Assembly: GCA_002189035.1 (NCBI GenBank)
Contig: NEEC01000008.1
Coordinates: 434,001-498,000, forward strand
Origin: Utricularia gibba
Taxonomy: Eukaryota > Plantae > Magnoliophyta
Length of the DNA stretch: 64,000 nt
Reading direction: 5' to 3'
Shown: piece after piece, positions 19,289 to 45,984 of the stretch
How the letters are laid out: each line of letters begins with the position of its first letter
Numbering within the stretch: position 1 is the stretch's first letter
Translations under genes and position numbers: made by a program
Notes under the pieces: model-generated
What the model saw: the letters and a program-made list of their open reading frames with translations, nothing else
Databases searched by the model: none
Told to the model about the DNA's origin: nothing

Positions 19289-20972
19289 TTAATTATGGGG
19301 CATGCGGTAGTGTGAAGCAGTAGCCATAAGAGTGTCCAGCTTCGTGGAAAGCGCAGAAACTTGTGCCTGGAGACTCTGAATAGCTAGCAGCAAGGTGTGC
19401 TTGGTGGGGCTGGAGGGTGCAGTGCTCAAAGGAATGTCTGTTGGCGTACTATATGGATTCACAATGGAAGGAGGCATAGAAGTAATGGTACTTTTGGTAC
19501 CCGCTTGAACAAAAACGGCCTTCCCCTCAACCTCCTTCAGGTAGCTGCAAGAAAACAGGTCATCTAAATCTAGATAACGGAGATGATTATCTACCTGAGG
19601 GGTCTGTTTTTCCAGGTTCACTTTCAAGTGTTGGGCAAGCTTGGTGATGAGTGAAGCAAATGGGAGCACTCTTTCATTCTTGGCGGTGATGGAATGCATT
19701 TGAGTTGCAATCCACCATCCCAAGTTGATGGGGAGCTTCTTCATCATCGCCCACAGAAAGAACACGATCACCTTGGCAATGATGCTGGTGCCTTGTTGGG
19801 TTGCGCTGTAACAGCCTCCCAAATACCTGTTCAACACTAAAAGAGCAGGGGCCCTCAAGTAATGGGCCTTGAGTTTGCGTACAGAATATGGGGCTCACAG
19901 ACAGACATTGAAGCATATGCATTCAGCACATTAAAATGTTCAGGATAATCACAGAAGGCTTGGAGGTAACGAGTAGTGGCTAAATCAGATTCAGAAACGA
20001 AGCCTAAAGCCACATTAAAATCATTGATAGACATACGAAAATTTTTGCCTGCAAGGCGGAAAGAAATCAAATTTTCAGCAAGGGGATTTCCAGCCACATC
20101 CTCAAACACAAAAGTAGTGTAAAATTCAAAAACAAGTTTGAGGTAAACTGGAAGACTAATTTCAAAAAATTGTCGCCACTCAGCAGAAGCATCAAATAAG
20201 CGATTAATATCAGCAAGTAGATTCAAATGCACCAAAGTAGGCGTATGCAACTTAAAATCAAAAAAAATTCTGCGCGACGTCAAGAGATTAAATAGAAGTT
20301 GAGCATTCTTATCTGAAAATTTCACAGTGTTTTTCAGCTGAGTTCAAGCAGGGGACTCCAGTGCTCGATCTCGCCAGAATTTTGTGCGACCGCGCTGTCC
20401 TTTACCTCGCTGTGTGGGCTGAGTTGCTTCATCTACATCCTGTTCTCCGGGAAGGAACTCTAGGCATGGCCTTTTATTAGCGGCACGCTCCATTTCAGAG
20501 ATCCAAAGATCGACCTCTTCGTCGATGTTGATCTCTTCAGGGGAATCTTCGTCCTGTGCTGGAGAAGGGGATGAGTGAATAATAGGAATTTCTTTTTCCG
20601 TACCTTTTTCTCTAGCAAGTTCTTCCGGTTGTATGGGCTGCGGGCTCTCGGGAGCAGAAATTGCTGCTGGGAATTTGGTTCTGAGGACTCAAGTGTGTCG
20701 GCAGCAACAATAGCGGCAACAGGGACTGGGTACCACTCCAGGTACAGCACCGGAGACACAATGGTAAGAGGCATGGCTTCAATCGGAACAGACTCCGTCG
20801 CAGCACCTAGAGATGGCTCATGAGCAGTGGGAACAGAAGCGTCTGCTGGGTTGTTGGTGCGGCGACGCTGGCTCCTTCTGGATGGTCCAGCAGCAGCAGG
20901 TTGACGCTTTCGAGTTGCTGCCTTAGCAGCACTTGTGCTTCGGGTAACCGGAGATGTGGGGCGTCCAAACAT
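19289..20972 (-). pseudogene. Athila extra 3' ORF (so-called env-like / ATHILA ORF family), interrupted
   Basis: Lies between integrase and the PPT. Disordered N-terminus, then WRQFFEISLPVYLKLVFEFYTTF...ISFRLAGKNFRMSINDFNVALGF, LRAPAL, INLGWWIATQM, LPFASLITKLAQHL. The track ORFs join after +1 base at 20669-20671 and 19890-19893, leaving one stop near 20343. Confidence 0.8.
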
Positions 20973-21262
20973 GGTGGGTCGGAAAATCAGAGAATTTCAG
21001 GCGAGAGAAGGAAGAATTGAAGCGTAGGCACAATAGTGAAGTGGGGTAACGGTTAGTAAAAATAGGAATGCCAAAAGAGAAAAAGGGAGATTGAGTGTAG
21101 AAACAGTTAAGGGAATAAGTGGTGGCGTGGGGCAGGTGAAAGTAAAGTCACTTGGAGTAGTGGGTGATAAAAACGAGGAAATAATAACGGTTACGAAATT
21201 AAAGTCATGGGTTGCCTCCCATGCAGCGCCAATTTACAGTCATTGGCCGACTGTGACACCTG

Positions 21263-24200
21263 TTAATGGCCCTCGACTAGCAGTAAGCTGCACACACTGT
21301 GCGGCTTAAACTTCTCATAAAATGGCTTCAATCGGTGTCCATTCACCTTAATGCTTTTCCCTGTCTCAAATGAGCGAATAATAACAGCACCAGAGGGAAA
21401 AACATTCACAACTTCATAAGGTCCAAACCACTTAGAACGCAATTTACCGGAAAGAGTTTCAAGGTAGTATCAAATAAGAGAACTTTTTGACCTACAAAAA
21501 ATTGCTTCCCATGTAACTTACTGTCATGGTAGCGTTTTACCTTTTCCTTGTGCAGGAGCTGGTTAGTGTAGGCATTGAGGCGAATTTCATCCAGCTCATT
21601 TAGGTCTAAAAGTCTGTTCTCCCCAGCTTGATCACTAGTCAGGTTGCATGACTTGACGGCCCAGTATGCCCTGTGATGCAATTCAAAAGGTAGATGACAT
21701 GTCTTACCATAGATCATTCGGTATGGAGACATTCCTATAGGATTCTTGTAAGCTGTATGGTATGCCCATAGTGCATCATTGAGCCTTGAGCTCCAATCTC
21801 GCCTATTTGGGTTCACGGTACGCTCCAAGATCCTTTTCACCTCTCTATTTGATATTTCCGCCATGCCATTTGTTTGCGGATGCCTAGCTGTGGACAGGCG
21901 GTGGTTGACTCCATATTTGGCCAATGCACTCTTGATGGCATGATTCACGAAATGGGTGCCACGATCTGAAATAATGATCTTGGGATGTCCAAACCTAGGG
22001 AACAAAATATTAGTCAAGAAATTACCCACGGTTTTGGCATCATCCCTTTCACAAGCAATGGCCTCCACCCATTTAGAAACATAATCAACAGCAAGAAGTA
22101 TGTAGAGCTTCCCTTGAGAAGGCGGAAATGGTCCCATGAAGTCAATGCCCCATGCATCAAAGATCTCACACATGATAATGGGTTGAAGGGGCATTTGATC
22201 CTTGTATCCCAAATTTCCTCCTCTTTGACAATTTGGGCATGCCTTGCAATGAAGGTAGGCATCCTTGAATATGGTAGGCCAATAAAATCCAGCCTCCAGA
22301 ACCTTCTTTGCAGTAACTTTTGCACCAAAATGTCCATCGCAAGGTAGCTCATGGCAATGTGAAAGAATAGAGTGCACTTCATCTTGGGGGATGCATCTCC
22401 TAATAATCTGATCAGTTCCGATTTTCCAGAGGTATGGATCATCCCAGATGAAATTCAGGCTATCACTCCTCAATTTCTCCTTCTGGTAGTGCTGGAAATC
22501 TGCAGGAAACTGTCCAGTCACTAAAAAATTAACAATGTCAGCGTACCAGGGACTCTCGTCATGAATCATGAATAAGTGTTCGTCCGGGAAACTGTCATCG
22601 ATAAGACTTGATTTTTCTCCAGAAGTGATGCGGCTGAGATGTCTGCAACTAAATTCTCGCATCCTTTCTTGTCCTTGATCTCCAAATCAAATTCTTGAAG
22701 CAATAAGATCCATCTTATGAGTCTAGGCTTCGAATCCTTCTTGGTGAGGAGATATTTCAGGCGGCATGGTCTGAATAGACTATGACTTTGGCTCCTAGCA
22801 AATAAGATCGAAATTTTTCCAAGGCAAACACAATGGCCAGCAGCTCCTTTTCTGTAGTGGTGTAGCTCTTTTGGGCATCATCAAGGCACTTGAACGCATA
22901 GTGGATAACATGGGATTGTTTATCCACCTTTTGTCCCAAAACCGCACCTAGAGCTACATCACTTGCATCACACATTAGTTCAAATGGTAGGCTCCAATTT
23001 GGAGCCTGAATAATGGGAGCGGAAACAAGCTTCTCTTTCAAAACATCAAAGGCGTTCATGCATTTTTCATCAAAATGAAACTCAACATCTTTATGCAATA
23101 AGGCACATAGAGGAGATGCAATTTTTGAAAAATCTTGAATAAACCTACGATAAAATCCAGCATGTCCAAGGAAAGAACGTACATCTCTCACACAAGTAGG
23201 ATAAGGTAATTTTTGGATTACCTCAATTTTGGCCTTGTCAACCTCAATTTCCTTTTGGGAAACAACATGTCCTAAAATGATACCTTGTTCTACCATGAAA
23301 TGACATTTCTCATAAATCAAAACAAGGTTAGTCTCTACACAACGTTTCAGAATCAAAGACAAATTAGCAAGACATTCATCAAAGCTATTTCCATAAACCG
23401 TAAAGTCATCCATAAAAACCTCTATAATATTCTCAACATATTCAGAAAAAATACTAACCATGCATCTCTGAAATGTTGCTGGTGCATTGCAAAGTCCAAA
23501 AGGCATTTTATGGTAAGCAAAAGTTCCAAAAGGGCAAACGAAAACAACCTTAGATTGGTCCTCAAGAGCCACGGGTATTTGATGAAAACCGGAGTATCCA
23601 TCCAAGCAGCAATAATGACTCCTCCAGCAAGTCTTTCCAACATTTGGTCGATGAATGGAAGTGGGTAGTGGTCCTTCTTGGTGGCTGCGCTCAATTTTCG
23701 GTAATCTACGCACATTCGCCAGCCATTTTGCACTCTTGTAGGCAGGAGTTCCCCTTGGTCATTGGCCATGACTGTGATACCTGTTTTCTTCGGGACAACC
23801 TGCACAGGGCTAACCCACTCACTATCAGAAATATGATAGATTATACCTGCAGCCAATAACTTCAGAATCTCCTTCTTGACCACTTCAATCATAGGTGGAT
23901 TCAATCTCCTCTGGGGTTGGCGAATTGGCTTTGTTCCCTCCTCCAAATAGATGCGGTGAGTGCATATGGAGGGGCTTATTCCTTTGATATCCACCAATGT
24001 CCACCCAATTGCCTGTTTGTGCTCCTGGAGCACACTCCTGAGTTTTTCCTCCTGTTCCAGGGTTAGTGTACTAGAGATAATAACAGGTAAAGTCTCATTT
24101 TCGCCCAGAAATAAATATTTCAAATGTTTAGGCAGTGTTTTTAACTCTAGTAATGGGCATGAATAACGGAAGGAATCAGCAGTTTCTCAGGCATTTCTAA

Positions 24201-26810
24201 ACTCAGAAAAGCAACGTCAGAAAATTCAGTTTTTCAGGAAAATAATCAAGATAATTTAAAAGTTCGGAATCAGAAAAAGAAATACGATCAGAATCAAAGT
24301 TTTCAGTAAGACATTTGAGCAAGGGATCTTGCTCATGGACCATCGCTAAGTGTTCTACATCTGCGTCAGATGTAGATATTGAGCAAATCTCGTTAATCTG
24401 GTCCGGATATTGCATGGTTTTGTCCAGGCTAAAGTCCAGCACCTGTCCATCAAACTGTAGAGAAATCGTGCCGGCTTGGACATCAATTTTGGTGCCTGCA
24501 GTAGCCATAAACGGTCGTCCCAAATGATGGACTCCGAAATCATGGGATTTTCGCTCTCCATTGGAATAACTAAAAAGTCAGCAGGAAAAATCAAATTTTC
24601 AACATGCACAAACACATCATCAACTCTACCATCAGGCTTCACATGTGATCTATCAGCTAATTGACAAACAACACTAGTAGGCTCAAGTTTACCTAGCTTA
24701 GATGCAAGAGAAAGATAAAGAGATCTAGGCATAACATTAACCGATGCTCCTAAATCACACATGGCAACTGAAATTTTGGTTTCACCAATAGTAACAGGTA
24801 TGGAAAACATACCTAGATCCTTACACTTTCTTGGAAGCCTTCTCTGAATAATTGCTGAAATATTTTCAGTCAAGGGAATTACCTCTTCCACTTTTTCCTT
24901 CTTCTTGGGGTCACATAAATCCTTCAACATTTTCGCATATTTCGGCACTTGATCTATCATGTCCAGCAAGGGAATATTCACATTCACCTTCTTCATCACC
25001 TCCATGAATGCTTTCAGTCCACGTTTGTCCTTATTTTTCCTGCGAAGTCTCATAGGAAAAGGAGGTGGAATGACTAGAGACTTGGGTTGATCAACTTCTT
25101 TCGACTCCTCTTCCTTCACTTCTTTAGGTGGCGTTGGTACAGGAGTGTTCTGGACTGGAGAATCATCAGGATGCTCTAAAATAATCTCCTCATCCACGTC
25201 ATCATCGTCATCCAAGACTTCTAATTCTTTTTCGTCAGATCTGTCCACCTTAGTCATGAACCATGGGTAAGGTTCCGGTAGATCCTTCCCACTTCTTAAG
25301 GATATGGCGTTGATGTGCTCTGGGTTCTTCACTGGTTGGGATGGCAGTGCACCTTGCGTCTCCAGTCAGTTCATGGCTTGAACCAGCTGGGTAATCTGGG
25401 TTTGCATGCTTGTAATTCGTCCTTCCATGTCTTTTTGCGCAGCATGCATTTTGGTGGTGCTTTCGGCAAGGGACTTCACCAAGGACTCCAGATTATGATT
25501 TGGCTGATAAGGAACAAGAGGTTGATCTGGAACTCCAGTGATTTGCAAAGGTTGAGGCGGAGCAGTGAGAGTTTTCTGAGAAACAGCAGATGGGTTCCTA
25601 GTGATGGGGCTTGACCAGGAGGCACTGGTTGTCTCTAGCGGAAACCAGGATGATCTCTTCGCGGCATTTGGTGGTTTCCGTAATTATAACTTCCTCCTTG
25701 GTTCTGGTAGAATGCATTCACCTCTTCTACTTGCATCTCGTGTATCATAGGTCCTGGATCAGAAAGATGAGAGGTTGAAGATCCGTGATACCTTCCTTGT
25801 TGTTGGAGGAGTGATTGGAAGCCAAGCTTCAAGGTATCACTCATAGCAGCAAGTTGAGCTAAAACTTCGGAATTATCCACTTCGTGCACTGATTTTACAG
25901 GCTGGGAATTTCCTCTAGGTGCTCGGTATGAGTAGTCATAACGACTGGAAGTAGAATAAGAGTTGGCAGCCATTTGTTCGATCAATCTGCGGGCATCAGC
26001 GCTGTGGCGGTTCTCTAGTAATGACCCATTACAAGCGGCATCCATTTGTCCTCTGATCATGGGGGTCAGTCCTTCGTAGAAATGTTGTAAAATTTGACCT
26101 TCAGTAAGCCCATGCTGTGGATAAGTGTTACATATCCGGTTGAATCTGTCATAATACTCCTGTAAATTCTCTCCTTCACTTTGTAGCATGGTAGCTAAAG
26201 CTCTTCTTCCCACGGAGGCTCTTCCTAGGGGCGCATATCTATCAAGAAACTTTTGAACCATTTGCTCCCAGGTAGCAATAGAGGATGGTGGTAGTCCATA
26301 CAGCCACTCCAAGGCTCGCTCAGTGAGACTGAAAGGGAAGACCCGCAGTTTGACTTGGTTCTCCGTAGCACCTTTTGGGCGCATGGATGCACAAGCCGTG
26401 TGCAACTCTCTAAGATGACGATTTGGGTCGTCATTTTCTCTCCCAGCGAACTTAGGAAGTGTCTGGAACAAATATGGTCGAAGCTCAAAGTCCTCTTCCG
26501 CGTCAAAGATGATACAAAGTGGTCGGTCAGCATGGCTTGCGGTGATTTCTTCTTTTATGGTCCTTAGTGCTGGGCCATGATTAGTGATCGGTAGAACTGG
26601 AAAAAATTGCGGATGCTGTTGCTCCTGTTCTCCATGCATTGTGGGGACTCCAGTAGGTGGTTGAGCATCCATTTCTTCGTCAGGAGATAGATTTGAAGTT
26701 AGTTCCCTCTTTTTCGCCAGAAATGTGCGCTCAATCTCCGGATCTAAAGGGCACAAGATGTCTCGGTATGATCTTAAGCTTCGATGTCCTTTTGGTGGAG
26801 CTGAATGCAT
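21263..26810 (-). pseudogene. Athila gag-pol (gag, aspartic protease, RT, RNase H, integrase), interrupted
   Basis: PLDPEIERT, KLRVFPFSL (gag); AMCDLGASVNVMP (protease); WRMCVDYRKL, LDGYSGFHQI, EVFMDDFTVYG (RT); LMCDASDVALGAVLGQ (RNase H); HELPCDGH...CPNC, WGIDFMGPFP, HPQTNGMAEISNRE (integrase). Stops at 25635-25637 and 25366-25368, plus several 1-bp homopolymer frameshifts. Confidence 0.95.
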
Positions 26811-28245
26811 AAAAACAAAGAAAAACAGCAGCAAAACGGAAATAAAAGAAAAACAAGAAGAAAGAAAGAAAAGAAAAGAAAAGAAAAAGAAAAACTATAC
26901 ACAACACTAAACACAAAAATACACAACTCCCGGGAACGGCGCCAAAAATTTGTTACGTGTCGTTTCCTCAAGAAATTTTAAATATTTTAAAACGTAAAAC
27001 ACTAGAAAGTGTAGTACGAGTATCGATCTCAGGGAGTTGTTTTTCGTGAAAAGTGTTTGCAAGCAACTTCTACAAAATGTCACGATTTTGTAAAAGGGGG
27101 TTTTTAAGATGCAAAAATGAAAGATACAATCTAAGTAATGGGCCTTGACTACGGGACGCAGTTCCTGGGAATAAGACTCCATCTCCTTCCTTTGTCCGTC
27201 CTTGCCTCAGTTTTCACTGATTTCTTCCGAATAGCTGGTTATAGGAGCAAGGAATAGCCTACTCTTCCTTATACTCTGATTGACAAGGAGGCACGGGAAT
27301 AGCCTCATGTGATTCCCCCTTGGACGATTAGGAAGACAAGAGGATTGCCTTCGATTGCCTTCAAAACCGAATTGTGTGCGTGTGCCCTGCTGTTGCCAAT
27401 GGCCAGTGGCAGGTTCGAGGTCACAACCTGTCCACTGTCGCGGTACCTAGGCCACAAACAATCTACTACTTCTCGAACCAGTAGGGTTGGAGTTGGTGCT
27501 CTTCACCTTGATCTTCACCAAAATCCGCGAGAAGTGGCCTGCTACTCATGGACCTTGACTAAGAGTCGTTACAGAAAGACTGTAACAAGACGCGTGGAAG
27601 TAAGCGGAATCCGAATGGAATTCAGTGAAGAACCGAGTGTATTGCTCAGGACTTGGAAGGAAACTTCATCTACTTCCCAGAAACTAAAGGTTTTAGCCCG
27701 AAAGGGCCATGGAAAACAGAAACGAAAGGAAACTAAGTGTTCTTCCTCCTTGAGGGGAGGAAGAACTCAAAAGTTTTAAGTACAAGGGAAAATGTTCAAA
27801 AGTCCTCAACTAAGTGTTCTAAGTGGCTTTTATATGACTTCCCACGTGCATTAACTCCTTTGGGTCCCCTTCCCATCATTCCTTCTGTCTTGCGTGCGCC
27901 AACAGACTTTCTTTGCGTGCAAGTTTGCGCCCAATAATTGTTGCAGACTCTGACATACCGTAAGTCATGGACCTTGACCAGTGTCAGTCTTCCGCCCACA
28001 ATCATTCCAACTTGCGTACAAGGCACGAAAACTCATAGTTTGATCACCTGCAACACTCCTGACAGTCTCCTGACATGCCTCGGTCAAAGTGTGAGAAAAA
28101 AATGCATAAAATATACACAAAATGGGAAAATAGGAATTTTCTAGTAAAAATCAAATACTTAATAATAAGACTCATAATTGGGCGACTTATCACTTAATTA
28201 ATACATAATAATACCTAAATAATAACTAGAAAATGACACTTAACA

Positions 28246-28830: not shown

Positions 28831-29831
28831 GTCTTACGAGCTAGGCATGAGGATCGAAACCGAGATTTATGAAAACGAACCGTAACCGAAACCGCAGTAA
28901 CTAGTCGTAGGTGCTTTCTAAGCACTCATATGAATCCTTATGGGTGTGTGGAAGTGAAATTTTTAATAAATATTAAATATTTAAAGAATTGATTTTTATT
29001 TTAAATAAAATTAATATATATATATGAAAAATTATTTTTTTCAACTATATTTCTAATAAATTATTTTTAGTTTAAATCTTTAATATTTTTGAGAAAATAT
29101 TTTTTTATTATTAAAAAGTGAATACATTTAAAGAATTTAGTCTTACAGTTTTACATAAAAATGAAACATAACAATGTTATATTAACATTATCTGTAAAAT
29201 AAGTAATTTGGTGAGATTTTAATATAATAATAAGAAATAAATAAATTTGATATAAGTTCAATATATAATAAATAATTTGGTATATGTTCAATGTATAATA
29301 TAATAAAAAATACATTAATTTCACTAAAATTAATAAATATTGTTATCGTCCATTTTGTAATTCGTATGATTGTTTTTTATGTTCAATTTTATAATTAATA
29401 GAAAAAACATGATTCCGTTGTTAAAAATTTGAAGCGATGCCTACGCATTAGAGGATTTCGTAGGATGTATAAAAAATGATACGAAATAATTTTCTAGTAA
29501 CGGTACCTACTAAATAAGTACTTTGGTAGGAGCTAGCCATAATAATACGAAATAATTCAATTTTACTGGAAAAAAAAAATATTGTTATCTCTTTTGTAAT
29601 TTGTATGTTTGCTTTTATGTTTAATTTTATAATTTTCGTAAAAAATGTCAATTAGTTATTAGAAAATTAAGCGATATTTGCAAAATAATTAGATTGTCAC
29701 GATTGAAATATAATACTACAAAATAAGTCAAATCTTTTGAAAAAAAAACACAACATTGTTAATGACTCTTTTCATTTTCTTCCCTTTCCTTTGGGTCTGC
29801 CTCTACCTTTTCCTTTATCTTTGCTTGTGCC

Positions 29832-32800
29832 TGTTGTTGCAAGAAAAATAGAGTCTTGGGAAGTAACAAAAAGGTAATGCTTATGAGATCACTTTGGATG
29901 AAAAACGACTCATGAACAATAAGAATGACCAAAAACCTAATTGACACACATTACTAGTAGGGTTTATATATACCCAATACCTAGGTTACCCAACAGTGGG
30001 CCACAATCATTGAAAACACACAAAAAGCCCAACAACTCGAATCCAACACTTCCATGCTAGAACTCAACACCTTTTTATCTGAAATATAACATTATGACAC
30101 AAGATTAGTGCTTTCAATCACCTTCAAGCTTTGGATTGAGGCTGATCTCCAACACTCCCCCCCAGACCGAGATCTCCCAACTTGAGAAAGTCTTCCATAG
30201 TCATGAGATTCATGTTCTTCCTTGCTAGCTCAAACTGAACTCTGTTCAAACCTTTGGTGAGCCCATCAGCAAACTGATTCCCACTCTCAACATACTGCAC
30301 TTTAATCTTCTTCTCCTTGATGTAATTCCTTATGACATGATACCTGATTCTTATGTGTTTGGCTTTGCTGAAGTTCGCCGGATCCTTGATAATGGAGATT
30401 GCAGCTTGATTATCCATAAGCAGATGTGCAGCTTCTTTTTGTATGAATCCAAGTTCGTTTAGCATCTGCCTCAACCAAACACAATAGTTCGAAGCATGTG
30501 CTGCTGAGATGTATTCTGCTTCAGCTGTTGATTGTGCTACCATTTTTGTTTCTTCGAAAACCAGACTATAGGGGTCTTATTTAAGAAGAAGAGTGCACCA
30601 GATGTACTCTTGCTATCTTCAGCCATACCATAATCACTATTTGAGTAGGCTCTAAGTTTCAAGATTGGTTTTTCACCTTCATAGGGATAGAACAATCCGA
30701 AATCAGTAGTAGATTTTATGTACCTGAAAGCTCTTTTCACAGCTGCCATGTGAGTTGTTGTTGGTTTGTTGAGGAAGCGAGATAAGACATTTACACAAAA
30801 ACACAAGTCAGGCCTTGTATGCTGGAGATAAATGAGGCTTCCAATCATACTTCTATAAGTAGTGGCATCCACATTCTTTCCCTGATTATTCTCTCCAATC
30901 ACCTGTTTGTAATCCAAAGGCGTTTTTGAAGGATTGACATCTTTGAACCCAAACCTTTCAAGAAGTTAAGAAGTTCATTACAGTACTTTTTCTGTGATAT
31001 GAATGTTCCAACACCTTCAAGTTGATGAATTTCCATGCCTAGATAGTAGGACATCATTCCAAGGTCAGTCATCTTGAATTCATTTTTGAGTAGAGCTTTG
31101 AATTCCTCAATCTTTCTTTCATTACCTGAGGTAATCATAAGATCATCCACATATAAGCTAATAAATAAACGATCATCTTCTTTTCCTTTAACATATAGTG
31201 AGTAATCACTATATGTTTTTCTGAAACCAATACCCTGGAGAAAGTTATCCATGCGTTCATTCCATGCTCTAGGAGCTTGCTTCAACCCATAGAGAGATTT
31301 CTTTAGCTTCAATACCTTGTCTTCATGACCTGACACTTCGAAGCCCTTTGGTTGTTCAACAAAAACAACCTCCTCCAACACACCATTCAAGAACGCAATC
31401 TTGACATCCATGTGATGCACTTTCCATCCATGAGCAGCTGAAATGGCAAGAAGTACTTTAATCGTGTCAAATCTTGCTACTGGTGCAAAAATCTCATGAA
31501 AATTTATTCCTTTGATCTGACTGTATCCCTTGGCTACTAATCTAGCCTTATATTTGTTGATAGAGCCATCTGCATTCATCTTGGTTTTGAATAACCACTT
31601 AAGGCCAATAGGTTTGAAACCCCTATCCTTGGGTTTATCAACTAACTCCCATGTTTCATTTTCAAGTATAAAATTCATCTCTTCCTTCATGGCCTCTCTC
31701 CATTTCGGATTTTGTACAGCCACTTCAAATGATGTTGGATCTCCTGTCAATAATCCAGCCAAAATATCAACTACAGCATCTTGGACATCATCATTCAACT
31801 TGGAGAAACTTATTGTTGGAGCCTTATTTCTATTGCTTCTTCTAATGTCAGTAACATGACTATCTTCATTATCTATTGAATCTCTGATGTTTTTGCGTTT
31901 CCTCCTTTGCCAATCATGATCAGATGGGTAATAATCTTCATCATCAGTATCAGGTTCCTCTCCATCAGATTCATCTGTTGATGAGTCTTCTGCATTCGTG
32001 CCTTGCTCCTCTTCTGGGATTTCGAAATTCCCATCTGAATGTTGATCATTGGCCTGATGAGATTGTCCATATAAGGGTTCAGAGTTTGATTCTGAATTCT
32101 CATTGGACAAGCCATCTTGATTTGTGACCATCTCCTCCTCTTGAGCTGGAAAATTCTCATCTGAATGCTGATCATTTACTTGATTTGAATTTTCATGAAC
32201 GAGTTCTGAAGTTTCTTGGTTTGTTGAATTCTTGGAAGAGAAGTTTTGAGGCATGTGTGTCCAGAGGTCTCCTTTAACATGGGTGCTATGCCTTCCAAGA
32301 CTTTTATGAGCTTCTCATCATTCAGAGCAATGCAATCATCAATTAAAGTATACCTTGCACCTTCATCAAAAGTGATATCATGGCTGAAGATAAATTTCTT
32401 CTGTTGAGGTAGATAAACATTATATCCCTTGGTAGTGTTGCTATAACCAACAAATACACCAGATACAGATTTCTTTTCAAGTTTTCCTCGTTTTTGGTCT
32501 AGTATATGAGTAAAACACAGACTACCAAAGATTTTGAGATGATCAACCTTTTTAATATTACCATGCCATTTTTCATGGGCGGTTTTTCCACTAATCGCCC
32601 TTGAGTCAAGCAAGTTCAATAGATATACAGATGTAGATACCGCTTCAGCCCAGAAATTTACAGGAAGATCTTTCTCAAACAATAGGCATCTTGACATATC
32701 AAGGATTGTTCTGTTTCTCCTTTCACATATACCATTCTGTTGTGGAGAATATGGTACGGTGAATTGATACATGATTCCCTCATTTTCATAGAACATTCTC

Positions 32801-35215
32801 ATGCTATTATTGTAGAATTCGCCTCCATTGTCTGATCTAATCATCTTCAAAGAGCATCCACTCTGATTCTCAATCATCACTTTGAATTTTCGAAAGATAT
32901 GAGGAACTTCTGACTTGCTTTTAAGAAAGTAAACCCAACAATAACGTGAATAATCATCAATGAATGTAACAAAATATTTACTCCCCCTAATGAACATTCC
33001 TTAAATGTTCCACAAACATCTGTATGCACAAGCTCTAATTTCTCCTTTGCTACTGAATCACTGGAATAAAAGGGCTTTCTACACTGTTTACCTTGATGGC
33101 ACACTTCACATATGGCATTAGCAAACTTGATGTCTTTCAATTCCTGTACTTCCTTATTCTTCTGCAATATTTTCAGATTGTTGAAGCTATAGTGCCCAAA
33201 ACGTTTGTGCCAAAGGCTTCTTTGATCCTGAAGTGAGAAAATACAACTTTTATGATCACTGACCATGATTTGGTAGAGGTTGTAGGTGGTCAACACAGCA
33301 TGGAATCAATCTTCGTTTTTGGATCAGCAACCTTAACTTTAGTGGTTATACCACCAGCGTCCTTCATCAGCTCAATGTCAAAACCTTCCCTGCTCAATTG
33401 GCCAAAGCTCAACAGGTTCTTTTTGAGGTTTGGTGAATAATAAGCATTATCAACTTGAACAATTCCTTCTTTTAGCAAGAGTAAAATGCTTCCTTTTCCC
33501 ACAATGCCAATATTTTCACCAGTGCACGTGCTTACCTCCTTCCCAATCTTTTCAAGCTTGAGAAATGACCTTGTATCACAACATACATGATAGGAGGCGC
33601 CAGAGTCCAAGTACCAGCCTTTAGCATCTGAGGCTACTATCATTAGAGCACACTCATACTCAAAAGGATCTTCAAAAGATATTTCTGGCTCATCTTCAAA
33701 GTAGGTAAAGGATGCATGTGATTTCTCTTCCCTGGAAGTAGCCTTCTTGTTATGCTCAACTTTTATTGGATTTGACATTCCACATACCTTGTCAAGATGG
33801 CCTCTTAGATTGCATTTCGTGCACAAAAGATCAGGTTTCCACCAACAAAACTCACTCCTGTGATTCTGTTTGTTACAATGCTTGCAAGCATTTGTGCTTA
33901 AAGTCCAACAATCTTCACTCTTATGGTTGGATTTGTCACAATGCCTGCACTTCTGATTGCCCATCGTTGATGTCGGGATTGACGTTGGTAATTGTTTGAT
34001 GGCTGTTGACTTGACATCCTTCACATTGTTAATTGCACCTGAGTTCATATTCATATTCTGCATTTTGGTGAGGAGAGCAGTTTCACCATAAGTTTTCTCA
34101 ACTTCATAACCATCTCTTAGCTCCAATCTCTTTTCTGTAGATTGCAACTCAATCATGAACTCTCTAAATGTTGGCTCTGGTGTAATAGGATATTCAGGAT
34201 ACAGCTGATGGAGCTTTCCTTCAATAATGTCAAGGATTTTTCTTTCTGTCTCAAGTGCACATAACTTTGGCTCGAATCTTGCAGGTAGGCTCATGATTGC
34301 CTTGCTAATCACCTTTTGATCCTCAAGTTTTTCCCCCAATCCTCGAATCTCCTTCACAAGCTTCGCAGTATGTTCATAATAGACTTTTATGGTTTCATTG
34401 TCTGACATTTTGTTCCTCTCAAAGTCCTCCAGCTTGTTTTTGCATAATATCTCTCTGAGTTTGGCATCGCCTTCATAATGGGATTTGAGAGTATCCCATA
34501 TTTCTTTTGCTGATAGACACTATGCAATATCATCAAATAGATGTTCAAAGATGGCTTGATACAAGGCATCCATTGCTTCATCTTTTCTCTGTTGAAGATA
34601 TTCAGCTTCCTCTTGCTGTTCTGATGTGGATTTGCTTGTTATTGTAATCACCGGAATCTCCCTTTCGACAACATCCCAAATCTTTCTGACCCGCAGGTAG
34701 CTGCGCATCTTTTTGACCCAGCTTCCATACTCTGAACCATCAAATATTGAAGGTCCTCTACCAGATGCCATCATAGCCACCGCTTGACAAGCTTTGGGTT
34801 GATACTTGGTAATCCACCAAGTAAAAAACGCTGAACGGTAAATAAAATACTGAAACGAACACAGGTTTGAGAACCTTACTGCTCTGATACCATGTTGTTG
34901 CAAGAAAAATAGAATCTTGGGAAGTAACAAAAAGGTAATGCTTATGAGATCACTTTGGATGAAAAACGACTCATGAACAATAAGAATGACCAAAAACCTA
35001 ATTGACACGCATTACTAGTAGGGTTTATATATACCCAATACCTAGGTTACCCAACAGTGGGCCACAATCATTGAAAACACACAAAAAGCCCAACAACTCG
35101 AATCCAACACTTCCATGCTAGAACTCAACACCTTTTTATCTGAAATATAATATTATGACACAAGATTAGTGCTTTCAATCACCTTCAAGCTTTGGATTGA
35201 GGCTGATCTCCAACA
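29832..35215 (-). mobile_element. Young full-length Ty1/copia LTR retrotransposon
   Basis: 323-bp LTRs at 29832-30154 and 34893-35215 with 3 differences. TSD GTGCC. PBS TGGTATCAGAGC (tRNA-iMet type, plus 34881-34892). PPT at 30155-30165. Confidence 0.98.
30124..34774 (-). pseudogene. Copia gag-pol polyprotein (gag, 3 zinc knuckles, protease, integrase, RT, RNase H)
   Basis: FDGSEYGSWVKKM (gag); WYLDSGASYH (protease); LWHKRFGH...CEVC, FIDDYSRYCWVYFLK, PQQNGICERRNRT (integrase); KARLVAKGYSQ, LYGLKQAPRAW, LYVDDL (RT); STAEAEY, KHIRIRYH (RNase H). One stop at 34520-34522 and five 1-bp frameshifts in homopolymer runs. Confidence 0.95.
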
Positions 35216-37565
35216 GTGCCCGCACTTGTAGAAGGTATGTCTCTTTGTTGAGCCATTGCTATAACATCGTTTTCATTCAATTGAGATTGCAATCTGTGAA
35301 GTTGTAATTCTTCCTCTAACACCTGTATTTTTTCATTCAGCTTCATTATTTCCAATTGAAAGTTGATAGATTTTTTTTGTCCAGCAATCAATTCATCGCC
35401 TTTCATCTTCAATTCAACCTTGTATACAGATTGTTGTGCTACCAAATCATCCATTCTGTTTTTGTTTTTCTAAATCTGAAACTTCAGATCTGTTATCTAA
35501 AGAAGAAAAAAAAACTAAATTAGAAAACATAAAAAAACAACTATCACATGTATTAGCAAAATAAGTTTCATTTTTATTACCCCATTTTCCATCCGTTGAA
35601 TGTGTTTATATTGGTTTAAAATGAGTTCTTTGTCATGTTTGGTGCAACCAAGAGCTTCTCATTAATATACACTTCAGCCTCCTCATGAATAGGCACTTCA
35701 TTCTCCCATCTCCATTTTCCTTTTCAGAATTCTCCTACATAAAATTTTTTTTATATTGCAAACCTTATTTATTTGAAGAGAAAATTAAAAATTTAAATAA
35801 TATTCCTACTTTATTTACATGTTGTTCATTGCTATATAAACAACAAGCAGATGACGATTTCGCCTTGATGTTTGTGCAGACCACCACTCAACGACACCAT
35901 GAATGTTTCGAAGTGCTGTCATAGTGTTAAATAAATAAGTAAAATAACATATTGGAAAAATAATGTACATTAACAAGACTTGCATCGAATTTGAGCAGAC
36001 TTCGAGATGATGTCTTCAGTCATATATCTTTTTGATTGCAAAAGACTTTTTAATGCATGTCTAGTTTCCTCATTCACATTGATTTTTTCAATACGAGAAT
36101 TTATAACATCATCCCCAGGATATGTCAATGGATAATGCCTTGAGATTTCAAAAGATATAGGTGGTACAATCCATAAAAGAAGTTTATCCCATCGTACCAC
36201 AGTTCTAGGTAGGTTTTGATAAAACCTAGTATTTGGTAATCCTTGAAAATACTATATTCCAGTAGGAGCTTTTTTTGGAAGAGATAGTGCAAAAAAATTT
36301 GACAAGTAGGTTCTACATATTCTTCTTCACACAAGTGTAAGAAGGCTAAGATAATATTATAGGAATATGGTGCTAAAAACCCAATAGGCAATCTCAAGTA
36401 GGTGAGCACATCAAGAGCAAAGGGATGAATAGGTAGTCTAAGACCAGCATCAAATGTTTTACGAGACACAAGCCAAGCATTGGAATGTTCATGAGGGGGA
36501 TTGGTGTCAAGAGGTGTGTTTTGCGGAGCAGGAATTGTCAACCAATCGGTTGGGATGAAATATTTAACACGAAATCTATCCATTCCCTAATCAATAAAGG
36601 ATACATAATAAGAATAAAATTCTAAAAATAAGGAAATGGAAAATAGCAAAACAAACATGATATTAACGATGAAAAACGCATCTAAACCCAACTAAATACA
36701 TAATTATATGAAAAGACAATTTTTAATAACTAAACCCAACTTAATATATAACGCATACTGCAGCAACAAATGCATAGAATACATTTCACAAAAATAATGT
36801 AAGTTGCAACAAAAAGATTACCCGATTTTAAGCCAACGAATTCTGGGTTTTCAGGAGCACGACAACACTGATAAGAAGAGCCTTTGTATGCAGCAAAAGG
36901 TGATGTAAACGAGGTAGGGTTCTACACTTAGATAGTGGACGCCAACTTTTTCAGAAAAGCATATTGCATAAAATAATTCACATCCATATATAGTCTAAAT
37001 CAATTGTTTAAAATAATTAAAAAAAATTGCGCCACCTACAAAATACTCATTGTTTGATGTGCCGTCCCAAATTTCAAATTTTCAGTATTTTAAAAATGAT
37101 AAACGAAAAAGGTTATGGATATATTTCATCGAAACCTACGCATTACGTGTGTTTGTATGTACCTTCTCAAAATCCAACTATTCTTACATTTTTTTAAAAA
37201 ATGAGGAGAATTTATTATACATTTAATTGTCCTAAACCCTTAATTAAACTACACATTTAAAATTTTAGTAGTTTTTGTTCATAGTAATGAAATTTATCAT
37301 CACCAATATTGTAACGTTAAAAATAATAAAAACCACATTTCTTTGCAAATATATGTTCAATATTTTTTTATAAAGCATCATAATATTTGACATTTAAATT
37401 AGAGAACAAGATATATTAGTGTCTAATGTAAATGTGGATGATTATTTATAAACTTTAATGTCATTATATTCCATTGAATTATACAATTGTAATTTTAGAT
37501 TTTTGATATATAACCAATTTAATAACCAAGTGTATGCAAGAGTATACTAGCAAAAAATGACTTAC

Positions 37566-39181
37566 CGGATTTTTCATTGATTTGTGAGGTGAATCATCAA
37601 TTAATAAGGTATTGTGACGGTCATATCTTGTGTTCAATCCATTGTTGACAGCCCATACACGATTCAACTCCTTCATGCAAACCGTGTTGCTAGGATTGTT
37701 GTGAACACGTACGCCGGTGTCCGTCGTCATGGTTTGGTCCCACATGAAAATGAGTTTGTCGAATAAGGAAGGTGGAAAGACTCATTTAGTGATTGCTTGT
37801 AGTTGCTCCCTACAAAATAAATCACTTGCAAGTGTTTGCACCAATTATAAATACCAACAAAAAAAAAAAGATGCAGCACACATACCCCCACGGGCATGTG
37901 GATGTAGAAAAACTACATAATTTGCACTAAAAATTACCTATGATATCTCAAAAATCATTAATGCACATAACACACAAATATAGGTATTGTTTTAACGTAC
38001 CTGATCGGCCATATATGATTTTATCTGGAGGGATTCGTGACCTTGATGCTCCAACCCTATAAACGATGTTTGTTAGCACACCATTTATATCCAAGATAAT
38101 CAGCTTTCGTTGAGGCTCAGAGGCACTAAAAGGAGGTCCGGTATATGCCCAACGACTCTCATACCAATCCAACTTGTTGCGAAGCTCTTCATTCTCCTTT
38201 GTTATAAATTCAAGTCTGTCATCGACATCATCGAGACCATGTGTGATCTCGTCCCCTTCAACATCATTCCCATCTTGTGTCCTCTCATTCCTAGACAAAT
38301 CTTCATTCTTTTGGGAGACTCTATGATTTTTCAACACACCACACCAATAGCGTTTTGTCCCCAGTGCATCCACAAATGGTGGTAAAATGTCAACAAAACT
38401 CATTTGCATACTTGAGAAGAGGAAAATAAGATCTTGTATATCCCTCTTGGATAAGGTATCAAATCCTACAATAAAAGTAAATTTATTAACAATATATTCA
38501 ACAAAAATATTGAATAAGAATATTCAACATGATAAGTGTAAAAATATTCGAAAAGGGTATTGAATAAAAATATTCAATCACAATAGTTTAAATAAGAGTA
38601 GATTAAAAAAAACACTCAATCATAATACTTTTAATAAAAACATTCAATACAAACATTCATATTTCTTCTAATAATACAAAGCAAGATTTACCTTTCGCCT
38701 TGCCTACTTCGCTCGAATTAGTATAAATTTGAGGAAATTTGGTTTCCTTTGGAGGACATATCCAAACAAAACTTGTCCACCATTATTCAAATCCTCTTCT
38801 CACATCCTTTACTAGCACCAACCCTTTTTTCCCCTTTAGGGTGTAGTGGTTCTTGTTTAGAGTCCTAGAGCATATACTCATAGCAAAAAAATAGCGAAGT
38901 TCCACCTCAAGATATAACTCCTCACAAATACTAACAAAGGCCAACACATATGAGATAGATCTTGGAGTCAAATGAATCTCTAAACATTCTAATATTTCTT
39001 CTAAAAAGGGCAATAATGGTAACCGCAAACTACAACGAAAATGTTCCGTGCTTAAGGCAAATCCCACTGGACCCACACGGTTTGGAATTTCATTCTCAAT
39101 CAACTCATCCGGTTCTTTGTCCCAAATCTCATCTTCATCCGGTATCAAGAATCTAGTTCTCAATTTTTCAGAAGTGTGCAT
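37566..39181 (-). pseudogene. Reconstructed multi-exon gene: TRP28-like domain fused to an FCP1/NIF-type HAD phosphatase domain
   Basis: Exons 39181-38692, 38465-38001 and 37912-37566, all GT-AG with consistent phase. TRP28 motifs RTRFLIP, SLRLPLLPFL, LTPRSI, WWTSFVWICPP. HAD motifs RKLIILDINGVL, KLIFMWDQ, KELNRVW, YDRHNTLLIDDSPHKSMKNP followed by a GTAAG donor. One stop at 38783-38785 and two in the last exon. The expected final exon was not found. Confidence 0.75.
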
Positions 39182-39859: not shown

Positions 39860-40260
39860 CTTAGACCATTTTCCAGACACCCACATTGCCTCGTGTGGAT
39901 GTCTGGAAAGAGAGTCGAATATCCTTTCAAGGCACCTACAAGGCCTTGTGTGGGTGTCTAGAAAGAGTGGGTAAGGCCATTTCTAGGTACCTACAACTGT
40001 TATATGGGTGCCTGGAAAGGAGTATTTGAGACAGTTTTCCAAACACCCTCTTCCCTCATGTTGGTGCCTCGGGAGGGTGTACAGGAAAGAGAGTTGGACG
40101 GCACCTACAAAATAATGTATTGTGTGGGTGTCTGGGAAGAGTGATTTCCAGGCACCCATGTCTGTTATATGGGTGCTTGGGAAGGATTATTTGAGACAGT
40201 TTTTCAGACACCCTCTTCCCTCATGTAGGTGCCTCGGGAGGATGTTTGCGAGTCTGCGAC
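39860..40260. repeat. Array of palindromic TTCCAG(G/A)CACCCA ... TGGGTG(C/T)CTGGAA modules
   Basis: At least six alternating forward and reverse copies, plus a larger internal duplication (about 39995-40075 vs 40165-40245). Related modules at 28916-28954 and 43601-43730. Confidence 0.8.
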
Positions 40261-40351: not shown

Positions 40352-42427
40352 TTAGGAGTCTTCAACTTCATCTTCACTTGAACTTGAGGATAAGGTTTGA
40401 TTTCTTTTCACAGCCTCCAGCCAATCCTTTAGACAAATGCATGCCTCTACGTTCAATTTGGAGCGCTTGTGATTAAGAACTCGTCCCCCTGTACTAAACG
40501 CACTTTCGGATGCCACTATAGATGCTGAAGGTGTTAGAAGATCTTTGACCATTCTAACCAAGATAGGGTAAGTAGTAGAATTTGTCTTCCACCAACCCAA
40601 TATATCAAAGTTGTCATCATCAACACTCTCAACAATAGGAGTATTATTGTAAAGTGTTTGAAGATGATGAAGAGGAGGACACAAATGAACTATGCTTCCT
40701 ACGAATAATGTCCATTGGATTGCGACTAACAAATGTCGAATTGTTACATGCTTTAGGAATAGGAACACTAGGATCCCTATATTTAGACGCATAAAGGGAA
40801 TACATGGCACGTAGAACATTATTGGCAACAACATCTATTTCTTCACAATTTTTAATGGAAAAAGCAACATCATCCACACTAAATGATTCTGAAATACATT
40901 CAAGTAATGTTTTCAGACTTAACCCGGGGATCCAAAATAGGTGCAACAAGAAACAAATGTGGGACTTCATCAAAATATTTCAAAAAATTATTTTTCATCT
41001 TTCGCACTACATCTCCCAAAAAATCACAATCACTTTGATGGTCATAAAAAGCAAACAAAATTTTACAAATACATGAAAGCACAAGTTGAGAAGTTGGGTA
41101 GTAAATACCACTCAAAATCTTAGTACAAGAATAAAGTATTTCTAATAAATTTACTAAACCTCTTATTTTTTCAAAAATAGAATGAGTCAAGAAATTGTAG
41201 CCCGTGACTGATTCACAAAATTCAATAAGAACATGTTGATAAGGAATCAAAAGTTGTAACATATCATATGTAGAATTCCATCAAGTTGGACAATCACTTT
41301 TAAATTTACGATAAGAGATGTTCATTTCTTGACAAATCCTTTTAAAATCATCTCTTCCATTAGGGATAGTTCTAATCATACTAATTAAATTACGAATAGG
41401 AGTTAAAAAATTTCACATTCTTTCAAACCATTTTGAACACACAAATTTAATATATGACAAGTGCACCTAGTGTGGAAAAAAATGCTATTTAACATATGAT
41501 TCATGCTATTTTTCAAAATGTCTATAGCATTTGTATTTGCAGAGTCATTATCCAAAGAAATAGAAAAAATCCTATCAGATATTCCATAAAATGCTATGAC
41601 CTTTTCAATGATTTTAGCAATAGAAAAACCATTATGTGGTGATGGCCATTCTTGAAAAACTAAAATTCGTTTTTGCATACACCAAGAATTATCTACCCAT
41701 GAACATGTAATAACAATATAACTCTCATTGTTACAACCTTTCCAACCATCACAAGTCAAACAAAAATTACAATGTAGAGATTTAAAAGTAGAAATTAAAG
41801 AGTCACGTATATTTTTAAAATCCTCAAGTGCCATATGATGTGCGGTTTTCCTAGAAAAATTTTTGTATCCCAGTTGAACTTGTTTCAACATATCATTAAA
41901 AGAAGGTTTTTCAACTAATGAAAAAGGAAGTTCATTAAGTATCGAATAACGCACCACATTTACTTGAAAAAGTTTATAATTAAAAACAAAATTAGATAAT
42001 CCCACACTATTGTCACCCCCTAAACATAATCTCGTTTGACGAAACTGAGGTAATTTATCATTATGCTTCTCCCTAACATGCCTCTTATATGTACCGGTTC
42101 CCAACCCTTTTTGAAAGTGTACTCTTTACCACAATGTTTGCAAGAAATTTTTTCGGGATTACAAAAAACAAAATGTTCTCGAATATCTAGAGAATCATTA
42201 CTAGTGTTTTTCGATCTTTAACGACAAAGGAGACTCGATGAGGTAGAAGAACCCACTTCTTGAGGACTAGAAAAATCATCTTGTTCGGGTAAAGGACCAC
42301 ATGCAAGCTCTTGTAAAAATTGAAGGTCTTCCCCAAAAGAAAATTCTCTATCATTTTAAAAAACGCAAGGTATAGTAGAATCAGCTTGAGAAGCTTGAGA
42401 AGAATTTTGCAAACCAGACCCCTCCAT
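40352..42427 (-). pseudogene. hAT-superfamily transposase (BED finger, DDE core, dimerization domain), decayed
   Basis: SCKHCGK...GTGTYKRHVREKH (zf-BED); CLTCDGW, SLDNDSAN, TRCTCHILNL, APILDPRVK; WWKTNSTTYPILVRMVKDLLTPSASIVASESAFSTGGRVL (Dimer_Tnp_hAT). Several stops and frameshifts. Confidence 0.93.
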
Positions 42428-43175
42428 TCTGTAAAAAATAAAAAAACCTATTACCCTATAGGCTTCACCAATGTCGTCCAAGTGGAATTCTGAAACTTGA
42501 CACTTGAGAGTACCTCCAATCACGTAGAAGTTGAAATAGAATTATTTCTAGTAATGAGTGATGAGACAATAAGAGAAAGTAGTGGAAAACTATAAGATAA
42601 CCATATCATATATATAGACAAATTTTATTAATAAATTAATAGCAACGATTACTTTCAAAACCATGTGCAACTCCACAGTCTGCACAGTCACAAATGCATG
42701 TACTAGCCGTTGAAATAAAAATATACATAACAAATATATTTTAAATAAAAATTTCAGATATGATGCTGCCACACGAGTCTTCACATGAACATTTTAAATA
42801 TATACTTATTTTAAATATACATTGCGTTACCAATATGGATACATTAGTTTGGCAATGCATAACTAGTTATTGAGAAAAAATATATAGATAGTGAAATGTT
42901 AAAATATTTTGTGAATTATTGTTATTCTGTTTTAGCATATAAATCTATTAAGTTATAGTTCAATAAACAAGTGAACTTAATATATGTCTACATAAAAATT
43001 AATAATTTATTTTTATGTGAATAATATAAAACATATATTTCATTCTCGAATAATCACATAAATTGGAATTTTTTAAATATTAATTTTTGTTTTACTAATC
43101 TGTTTTACAACAAAAAACAACGTTCAACATAAACTTTGATTTATGTATTTAAATTTATGTATTGAATTATTTTAT

Positions 43176-43470
43176 ATTAACGCTACCTACGAAAGTAGTA
43201 ATTTGGTAGGAGTCGAATACACAAATATGTTGGACTCCTACCACATGACTTATTTCGTAGGTGCCATTAATGTGGGACATACACAGGCGTGGTTTATGCA
43301 TAACCTATGTCCGTGTGTTGGATTTCTACCAAATTACTTATTTCATACGTAGCGTTAATACAAGATACACATGGGCATCGTTTATGTATAATCCGCGTTC
43401 GTGTATTGGACTCTTATCAAATTACTTATTTCATAGGTAGCGTTAATGTGGGTACACATGGGCGTGGTTC
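43176..43470. repeat. 88-bp tandem repeat (about 2.7 copies) preceded by an inverted partial copy
   Basis: Units start TTGGA at 43230, 43318 and 43406. 43176-43222 is the reverse complement of the unit core. A further copy of the core lies at 29501-29533. Confidence 0.85.
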
Positions 43471-43849
43471 AAAGAAGACAATGAATACTCCATCTCAAAA
43501 GCCATGGATGTATATTGCCATTTGTGAACAAAAGAAATCAACAAGATGAAAAATAAGTGTATGTAATTTAAAAGAGTGTGTCGTGAGGGTATTGAGACCA
43601 TTTTCTAGGCACTCACATTTGTCGTGAGTGTGTTTGGGAAGGGGTGTTTATTAAGGGCAAAAATCGATTTAGACCCCATCAGTGCTTGATAAGATTTTTC
43701 AGGCACCCACTTCCTTTGTATGTGTGCCTAAAAAAATTTAAAAAAATAATATACATTTTTTTATTTTAATTTTAAATTTTAAAATTTTAAAATTTTTAAA
43801 ATTGTTTTTAATTTATTTTTAATTGTTTTAATTTTTTTTTTAAATCCAA

Positions 43850-44023
43850 ACCGCACGGTTTACGGTTCGGAACCGTGAACATTACGGTTCACACACGGGT
43901 TGGAACCGTCGGTTCCACGGTTCCAATTATGCCGAACCGAACCGAAACCGTACGGACATCCATCCGTTGAAACCGACTGTTTCGGTTCGAACCACGGTTC
44001 CGGTTCAATCGAACCCACCTCTA
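43850..44023. repeat. hAT-type subterminal AACCG/CGGTT repeats and terminal inverted repeat
   Basis: Dense AACCG/CGGTT pentamers ending ...GAACCCACCTCTA (TAGAGGTG on the minus strand), resembling Ac-like hAT ends. Confidence 0.8.
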
Positions 44024-45045
44024 GACTGATCCCTTACATTCTATGTAGGTGGTGAGTCAGGTAGTAGCACGGGCAAGGATGCGATATGATTGGGCGAGGA
44101 ACACTATAGCGCTAGTAGTATGTAGTGTAACTATGGCGTGCATGTGTTGTGGGCTGATGTACCACCATTTTGTGACAGTTCTCATGATGGTATTAGTATC
44201 TTATCGCTATATTTCATCATTTTCTCACCACATTTCCGCCACCCCATCACCATCTCCTCGCCATGGGGCACATGGAACCCTAAAGGGGTCCTGGTGTCAT
44301 TCGAAAGCATCCTCCCTATTATATATGTTGAATATACTAAATTATAGATAACGACACTAGACATAAAAATATTGAAAAAAACTACATTTTTTTGCTAAAG
44401 ACAGAAGATGTCCTATGATGGGGTCCGGCACCTCCAACAGCACCTCCCCCCTATGATTGTAGAACATTTCAAAACTTGTGTAATGGTAGTAGACATCAAT
44501 CTATCAAAAAAAAGTAATGTTTTTTAGGAAGTCTTGGGTAAGTTCCTTACATGTCACGTCCTTGTCGTGTCCGAGCACCTCCACGAGCCATGCCTCCGCC
44601 AAAGAGTCTTGTCCTACAGCCCCCTTCCCTGTGACGATTCGTAGCGACACCCTGATCGGGCAAACCATCACCACATGCATGCTGGTAGCATGATCGCAGC
44701 ATCACTCTCTGCACCCAAGGCATCCCATACAATGCATCCTATGCACATGCCTAGTGTAGCCTCGCCCACATGTGGTGTTCGTTCCTGCCAAGTGTGTCCA
44801 TGACCGGGGTTTTGGGCATAGAGGTTAGCATGGCACAAAAACCAGCCTTTGTTCATACTTAGCAAAATGTCAAGTTCAAATAAGAAGAAAAAAAGGGAAA
44901 ATAAGCAAATCTTGTAAGGTTCATGTGAAGCGCCCCAAGAACTACCCTGACCACCATCACTCAGCCGTCCCATCCTCAATATAAGCCACACTTATCCTAT
45001 CCATGCTCTCATTCCCGAATGCCCCTACAAGATATGTAAGGGGTT

Positions 45046-45984
45046 CAGCTGCATGCGAAAGTTGGAAAGGCGGTGAAACACGAAAAAGGCATTACAATTC
45101 AGCTGCGTGCAAAACTTAACACTTTTTCTTTTCTTTTGAGGTGAAGGGCGAACAGAAGATTCTGGAACCGGATCAGAGGGAAATGGATTTATCGAATCGG
45201 AAGTGGGAGGTGTACTAGAAATAATAGGGATATCAGGTGGAGACTGAAAGAGATGATGAAATTCTAACTCAGAACCAGAGGGGATGATGAAATCGCACCA
45301 TGCCCCCCCCCCCCCCGAATATGACCAAGGATCCCGCAAGTGGTCAATGTATCTCACGATAACATTTGGAACCGGGACTCGTATTTCACAGAGCATTCGT
45401 TGAGCCTCCGATACACATCTCTTCGAGAATCATTAGAAGGGCGAAAGCAGCCGACCTCAAAGGGACTGGGAGGCTTAATCGGGAAGTTCCATCTAGCTCC
45501 TATGAGGGGAGCAACCCAAATAAAGGAAGACCACCAATCATGATGGGTATCGGGAGGTTTAACGATGAAATCGGGATGATCTTCGAACCGGCGAAATTGA
45601 AAGTGAGCACGCCCATGCATCAGCGGCTTAGCTTTTCAAACTGCAACTTTGAAGAGTTGAAAAAAAATCCACCAAGGTCATTGCCGGATCCATACCCGCC
45701 GAGTAGAACAAGAAGGCAGTAAAGCAAAAGATTGAATTCGGGGCTAGGCAATAGAGGGGGATTATGAACATATGAAGAAATTGAACGAGTAGAGGATGGA
45801 GCGGAAATCGGAGGCCGCTTTCTAAATAGGCAATGGGGATGGGGAGATTAAAACAGGGAAGAGGCATTTCCCCAGATCCCCAAGGAATCTGACCATCCCT
45901 AGCCTGAGAAATGATATATTCTTCCGGAATCAAATATTTGGAGCGGATTGCAGGGATGCTCAGTGTGCTAGATCTTCTGCCCAT
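45046..45984 (-). pseudogene. Antisense Transposase_28 (TRP28)-like ORF of the Tat/Retand fragment, frameshifted and truncated
   Basis: RSKYLIP, ESGLRFPLHPLL, LAPNSI, PDTHHDWWSSFIWVAP; intronless; antisense to the LTR, as described for Retand elements. Confidence 0.8.

Follow-up and report, generated by a model that had tools for sequence, protein, structure and literature searches.

A copia insertion near the end of a probable plant transposon gene with an AT-hook-like tail in Utricularia gibba

The DNA analysed here is a stretch of 64,000 nucleotides (the window) from Utricularia gibba, comprising positions 434,001 to 498,000 of the forward strand of contig NEEC01000008.1 in assembly GCA_002189035.1; all positions given below are those of the window. 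Between 29772 and 36583 three pieces of coding sequence can be recognised, namely an open reading frame (ORF) with a TRP28 domain, an ORF predicted to form one long helix, and a short basic tail with the core RGRP, all three of them co-oriented. The tail is now parted from the helix ORF by a Ty1/copia retrotransposon, which has inserted into the final coding part of what is probably a plant transposon gene, one that ends in an AT-hook-like tail. An earlier account of the locus, made from the letters of the sequence without database searches and referred to here as the sequence-only reading, had described a hidden gene with a TRP28-like first exon, a heptad-rich exon and an AT-hook tail, revealed by removing the copia element. 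The features are collected in Table 1.

The long terminal repeats (LTRs) of the copia element differ from each other at 3 of 323 positions, and the 5' LTR is adjoined by a primer site that resembles in sequence the tRNA-iMet type. The internal ORFs match gag, Pol_BBD (the Pol beta-barrel), rve and RVT_2 in Pfam, the last with E 2.5e-82, with rve preceding RVT_2 in the coding direction of the element. This copy is defective, because its polyprotein is broken into at least six separate ORF pieces. It lies in the same orientation as the gene that it interrupts, at a point 19 codons ahead of the stop, and is flanked by the target-site duplication (TSD) GTGCC. The upstream flank, read from the ATG of the helix ORF, ends ...STSA, and codon arithmetic places the beginning of the next codon at the first base of the TSD; the downstream flank, if reading begins where its own copy of the TSD begins, gives GTSKDKGKGRGRPKGKGRK and then the stop. 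Since both flanks read GTGCC in the same codon phase they hand over in phase, and the frame without the copia element would end ...STSA-GT-SKDKGKGRGRPKGKGRK-stop. The sequence-only reading had placed the TSD inside a coding exon whose frame is restored by joining the flanks, and the arithmetic on the two flanks bears out the restored frame.

Table 1. Features of the locus and of its surroundings, in positions of the window
Feature	Position	Strand	Remarks
TRP28 ORF, 152 residues, ATG 36583	36125-36583	minus	PF04195 at residues 40-101
Homopolymer run, T7 on + strand, frameshift break	36270-36276	minus	from here the reading homologous to the family is no longer in the ATG frame
TAG, in frame with the homologous continuation	36252-36254	minus	relative P0035 has F there
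93 open codons in the shifted frame, homologous TRP28 continuation	35973-36251	minus	G..FQ..LP.....W...PP pattern
Helix ('coiled-coil') ORF, 78 codons from ATG 35454 to the TSD	35221-35454	minus	AlphaFold helix (predicted)
TSD GTGCC, copy adjoining the 5' LTR	35216-35220		
TSD GTGCC, second copy	29827-29831		
Ty1/copia LTR retrotransposon	29832-35215	minus	5,384 bp; LTRs, TSD and Pfam matches
copia LTRs	29832-30154 and 34893-35215	minus	323 bp each; ends TG...CA
Basic C-terminal tail SKDKGKGRGRPKGKGRK and stop codon (29774-29772)	29772-29826	minus	read from the downstream flank
RGRP core	29804-29793	minus	in the tail reading GKGRGRPKGKGRK
Left AACCG cluster, 4 copies	28858-28894		probable left terminal region of the host DNA transposon
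Right AACCG cluster, 15 copies	43849-44005		probable right terminal region of the host DNA transposon
Palindromic subterminal repeats of ~59 nt, left	29174-29718		
Matching subterminal repeats, right	43168-43450		inverted orientation
Second TRP28 gene	~39181-37566	minus	co-oriented with the hAT fragments and the first TRP28 ORF
hAT transposase fragments	40352-41262	minus	separate ORFs for the RNase-H-like fold and the C-terminal dimerisation domain
Ty3/gypsy LTR retrotransposon	17133-28245	minus	LTRs 17133-18437 and 26951-28245, 97.2% identical

The first ORF matches the TRP28 (Transposase_28) family PF04195 with 45.5 bits, against a gathering cut-off of 26.2 (E 9e-12), and as far as the domain is concerned the claim of a TRP28-like first exon is confirmed. 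Among 54 aligned sequences the residues R49, P51 and P72 do not vary, and G47, F81, C85 and F97 hardly do; of the residues conserved in the family the ORF has kept G, R and P in the block G-L-R-x-P-L-H-P-F and, further on, P, F and C. The residue after the conserved P is Y here and N in most relatives. With the alignment as input, AlphaFold predicts for the first 105 residues (36269-36583) a small, compact helical domain, with a predicted local distance difference test score (pLDDT) of 91.6 and a predicted template modelling score (pTM) of 0.77. Foldseek returned no match to this model, the best VIA-align Z among 48,161 PDB representatives was 3.9, and the family profile matched none of the PDB sequences. 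An exhaustive search of 1.84 billion representative proteins with the TRP28 ORF gave 51 relatives, the best of them with 40% identity and E 1.7e-8, and none at E 1e-10 or better. These relatives are distant and come from plants only, those with names being uncharacterised grass proteins; many of them, of about 500 residues, have C-terminal coiled coils. A word-index protein search with the same ORF was blank, and locus searches of viral and metagenome contigs yielded no relatives.

The relatives align to the ATG frame only as far as about residue 104 of the TRP28 ORF, and from there the reading homologous to the family passes, at a homopolymer run, into a shifted frame, which carries an in-frame TAG. 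In the test of this continuation the sequence was read through the break, one X being placed at the frameshift and another at the stop codon; local alignments were made to 38 relatives and compared with 60 shuffles. The shifted frame extended the alignments colinearly, with a higher score for 18 of the 38 relatives and a mean gain of 5.2, as compared with 0.93 +/- 0.50 (maximum 2.03) for the shuffles; continuation in the ATG frame gained 0.84, no better than its own shuffles. The alignment to relative P0035 is gapless over 114 columns (query 29-142) and runs straight across the break. Only this colinear-extension test separated the two frames, which a profile of the downstream region and piecewise blastp both left indistinguishable from shuffles. 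The possibility that the frame change between 36252 and 36276 marks an intron was considered and rejected, the distance being far too short and devoid of a GT..AG pair.

The helix ORF was modelled by AlphaFold from its single sequence as one helix spanning residues 2-70, with a mean pLDDT of 90.1. The model shows a long, amphipathic-looking helix, which would likely form a coiled coil, and about 3.5 heptads can be picked out by eye (F-I-L-I-L-L). No relatives of this ORF were found by the word-index protein search or by locus searches of viral and metagenome contigs, and it has no similarity to the C-termini of the TRP28 relatives. In the tail, the core G-R-P within RGRP is flanked by lysine and arginine, as in the core pattern of an AT hook. 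Stop-free occurrences of RGRP with at least four flanking lysines or arginines were counted in the six frames of the window and in 30 shuffles; there is one in the window and none in the shuffles, and the motif therefore stands above background. RGRP is absent from all 51 public TRP28 relatives, which are distant (at most 40% identity), and its absence was counted against the sequence-only reading.

All of these pieces lie within an AT-rich unit of about 15 kb (~28.8-44.0 kb of the window; GC 0.32-0.37), near whose two ends are clusters of AACCG that occur nowhere else in the window. Inside these ends are the subterminal repeats, the left set of which is only about 50 bases from the stop of the gene. 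Three tandem 88-nt units at 43228-43490, 72-83% identical, contain a palindromic CTACC...GGTAG motif that is also present, inverted, near the left end (29174-29718), and these units are candidate protein-binding subterminal repeats. A further family of partly palindromic repeats of about 25-32 nt, of the type TTTCCAGGCACCC...GGGTGC, is found both at 39860-40250, in the gap that separates the hAT fragments from the second TRP28 gene, and at 43595-43730, towards the right end. The hAT fragments match Dimer_Tnp_hAT (PF05699, E 2.5e-21) and hAT-like_RNase-H (PF14372, E 5.5e-9), and since these domains fall in separate ORFs, either the transposase gene is broken or it contains introns. In the second TRP28 gene (region 38783-39181, downstream to ~38732), which is thus broken as well, an in-frame stop immediately precedes the W..F.W..PP block (E*WWTSFVWICPP).

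The locus is probably the decayed remains of the third gene in a dead hAT-like DNA transposon, a passenger or accessory gene of that element and not a chromatin gene of the host. When intact, the gene would have specified a small accessory protein with an N-terminal TRP28 domain, a single long helix and a C-terminal AT-hook-like tail. The helix would pair with a partner helix, the tail would dock in the minor groove of AT-rich DNA, for example that of the element's own ends, and the TRP28 domain would supply some activity of its own. The anatomy of the locus, its breaks and its transposon context are shown by the sequence; we infer that a single protein once comprised these pieces and bound the DNA of its own element. 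The present copy cannot make it, because of the frameshift and TAG in TRP28, the unreadable link to the helix ORF and the later copia insertion. The sequence-only reading was right on the architecture, but this is not an intact gene hidden by the copia element alone, given the frameshift and in-frame TAG in the TRP28 part and the want of a credible splice path to the helix ORF.

Several observations weigh against this picture of a decayed accessory gene. The crude heptad a/d score of the helix ORF is 8.8, as compared with 7.5 +/- 1.5 for shuffles, and 96 of 500 composition-preserving shuffles reach 8.8; of the heptad-rich exon that had been claimed, the predicted long helix (pLDDT 90) stands, but the heptad score does not rise above shuffles. 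Pfam hmmscan of the 20-residue stretch, at E up to 10, did not list AT_hook, a very short model of which weak matches are dropped by the HMMER filters. Of the two models named in the sequence-only reading, HMMER matches PF04195 above its cut-off and does not list AT_hook; the basic RGRP tail itself is in frame and unique in the window, and RGRP is found in none of the 51 relatives. For the presumed hAT element no 8-bp TSD was found, the 8 bases flanking its proposed ends being different, and its terminal inverted repeats are weak: both ends are AACCG-rich and have a terminus of TAG type, but they align at only 67%. The missing TSD and the weak alignment of the termini make the ends of the element approximate. 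The frameshift in the homopolymer run could be an assembly error, but the in-frame TAG cannot be explained as an assembly error in a homopolymer run. Lastly, the helix and tail could belong to a separate small gene.

This last alternative supposes a broken TRP28 gene beside an independent small transposon gene for the helix and the AT hook, the two never having been spliced together; once the copia element is removed, the latter would run from the ATG at 35454 to the stop at 29772, about 97 residues. An in-frame TAG at 35472-35470, 15 bases upstream of that ATG, fits such an arrangement, as does the dissimilarity of the helix ORF to the C-termini of the TRP28 relatives, and so does the outcome of the splice search. 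This took in all GT..AG pairs with up to three introns, a donor score of at least 4/8 and an acceptor pyrimidine fraction of at least 0.55, and it revealed no stop-free path from the ATG at 36583 into the helix frame. Without these thresholds there were only contrived chains, one with a 13-nt micro-exon and the other with a weak donor that cuts TRP28 at residue 89. The spliced chain of exons proposed in the sequence-only reading was accordingly not recovered, in that no GT-AG path has decent signals. The best nearby acceptor, at 35496 just upstream of the helix ORF, runs into stops in all three frames; as the strongest acceptor it nevertheless suggests an internal exon whose frame has since been lost, which argues against two genes. 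The TRP28 ORF and the helix ORF are, moreover, on the same strand and about 500 bases apart, with no other gene signal between them, and many TRP28 proteins of about 500 residues end in coiled coils (PMC11963269). It is this co-orientation, the short spacing and the coiled coils that point to one transcript, and two separate genes seem to us rather unlikely.

It is very improbable that the locus is instead a domesticated host chromatin gene, with TRP28, a coiled coil and an AT hook, knocked out only by a recent copia insertion. Such a history would accord with a young insertion (3/323 LTR differences) between flanks exactly in phase, and with a frameshift placed in a homopolymer run, where it is perhaps an error of assembly, but it leaves the in-frame TAG in the homologous frame and the lack of a credible splice chain to be accounted for, and the position of the locus, between hAT transposase fragments and subterminal repeats of transposon type, speaks against it, as does the failure to find close relatives among the 1.84 billion representative proteins. 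Equally improbable is the proposal that the tail is a chance product, a purine-rich stretch of low complexity in which no stop happens to follow the insertion site at once, and which was never protein. Only 17 codons follow the duplication, an open run of a kind that is not rare, there is no Pfam AT_hook match, and none of the 51 relatives has RGRP; yet the six frames of the 64-kb window contain a single stop-free RGRP with at least four flanking lysines or arginines, the 30 shuffles contain none, and the motif lies in exactly the frame handed over by the upstream ORF. For annotation, a decayed accessory gene means that the locus should be recorded as a nested-transposon relic and not called a host gene.

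A modest wider point is that TRP28 occurs here twice, co-oriented, inside a hAT-like DNA transposon, whereas in the literature searched the one paper that analyses TRP28 describes it in Retand retrotransposons only (PMC11963269). The literature searched contained no paper with TRP28 in a DNA transposon or joined to an AT hook, and the combination of TRP28, helix and AT hook is mildly novel. If intact copies exist, they would provide a testable handle on the role of TRP28, and their AT hook would suggest that its target is DNA or chromatin. It may be conjectured that TRP28, an oligomerising helix and an AT hook together make up an undescribed class of accessory proteins on hAT-like, perhaps Mutator-like, transposons, which would share the TRP28 module with Retand and bind AT-rich subterminal repeats for assembly of the transposition complex or for anti-silencing; this is distinctly unlikely on present evidence.

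Elsewhere in the window, a Ty3/gypsy element with 1.3-kb LTRs and ORFs for gag and integrase is older than the copia element. The gene was also considered as part of this neighbour and the idea rejected, since it lies outside the gypsy LTRs; the gypsy element ends 1.5 kb away and is on the same strand. At 266-5650, on the minus strand, there are long ORFs (194-552 residues) rich in coiled coil, with weak matches to Pfam coiled-coil families only. They look like exons of a large host coiled-coil gene, of the golgin or myosin-tail type, and this is the only apparent non-transposon gene that was noticed.

In comparison with known systems, the inserted element has the marks of Ty1/copia, namely near-identical LTRs with TG..CA ends, a 5-bp TSD, an iMet primer site and the order gag, protease, integrase, reverse transcriptase, RNase H. 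As a nested Ty1/copia insertion the case is ordinary in kind; the polyprotein of this copy is in at least six pieces. In AT-hook proteins such as HMGA and the plant AHL proteins, an RGRP core with basic flanks reportedly binds the minor groove of AT-rich DNA. The tail resembles hook 2 of HMGA and the type-I context of AHL, in that RGRP is preceded by G-K-G-R and followed by K-G-K; it differs in having a single hook at the extreme C-terminus, with no PPC/DUF296 domain and no acidic tail, and binding of AT-rich minor groove by this tail, judged from its sequence, is putative. Accessory DNA-binding proteins of plant DNA transposons include TnpA of En/Spm, which binds subterminal repeats, and VANC of the Mutator-like VANDAL elements, which binds its own element and relieves silencing. 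The gene described here would likewise be a second or third gene, co-oriented with a transposase, in an element with repeated subterminal motifs. It has no relation in sequence or fold to TnpA or VANC, so that the likeness would be one of genomic logic alone; by analogy, such an accessory gene could plausibly specify a small DNA-binding protein that oligomerises.

The closest parallel is with the Retand elements of the Ty3/gypsy group, in which TRP28 is an antisense ORF of unknown function, predicted to bind DNA (PMC11963269; PMC6317226), and has been reported to lack similarity to other known transposable elements (PMC11963269). The antisense ORFs of Retand include Smc-like ones, and TRP28 with a coiled coil is therefore a known architecture (PMC11963269). 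The gene here has the same N-terminal domain as the Retand TRP28 ORFs and is likewise borne by a transposon; a coiled-coil region often follows the domain. A weak third TRP28-like ORF in the window (45628-45984, minus strand) reaches 23.7 bits with PF04195, short of the cut-off; it is situated in a repeat block of higher GC, parts of which recur about 5.9-7.6 kb away with 84-91% identity (44629-47900 as compared with 52207-53836), and it may be in a setting of the Retand type. In Retand the TRP28 ORF is antisense, between pol and the 3' LTR, whereas the gene interrupted by the copia element is in an AT-rich unit with hAT fragments; from the public TRP28 proteins it differs in its identity of at most 40%, in its basic RGRP tail, and in being a broken copy.

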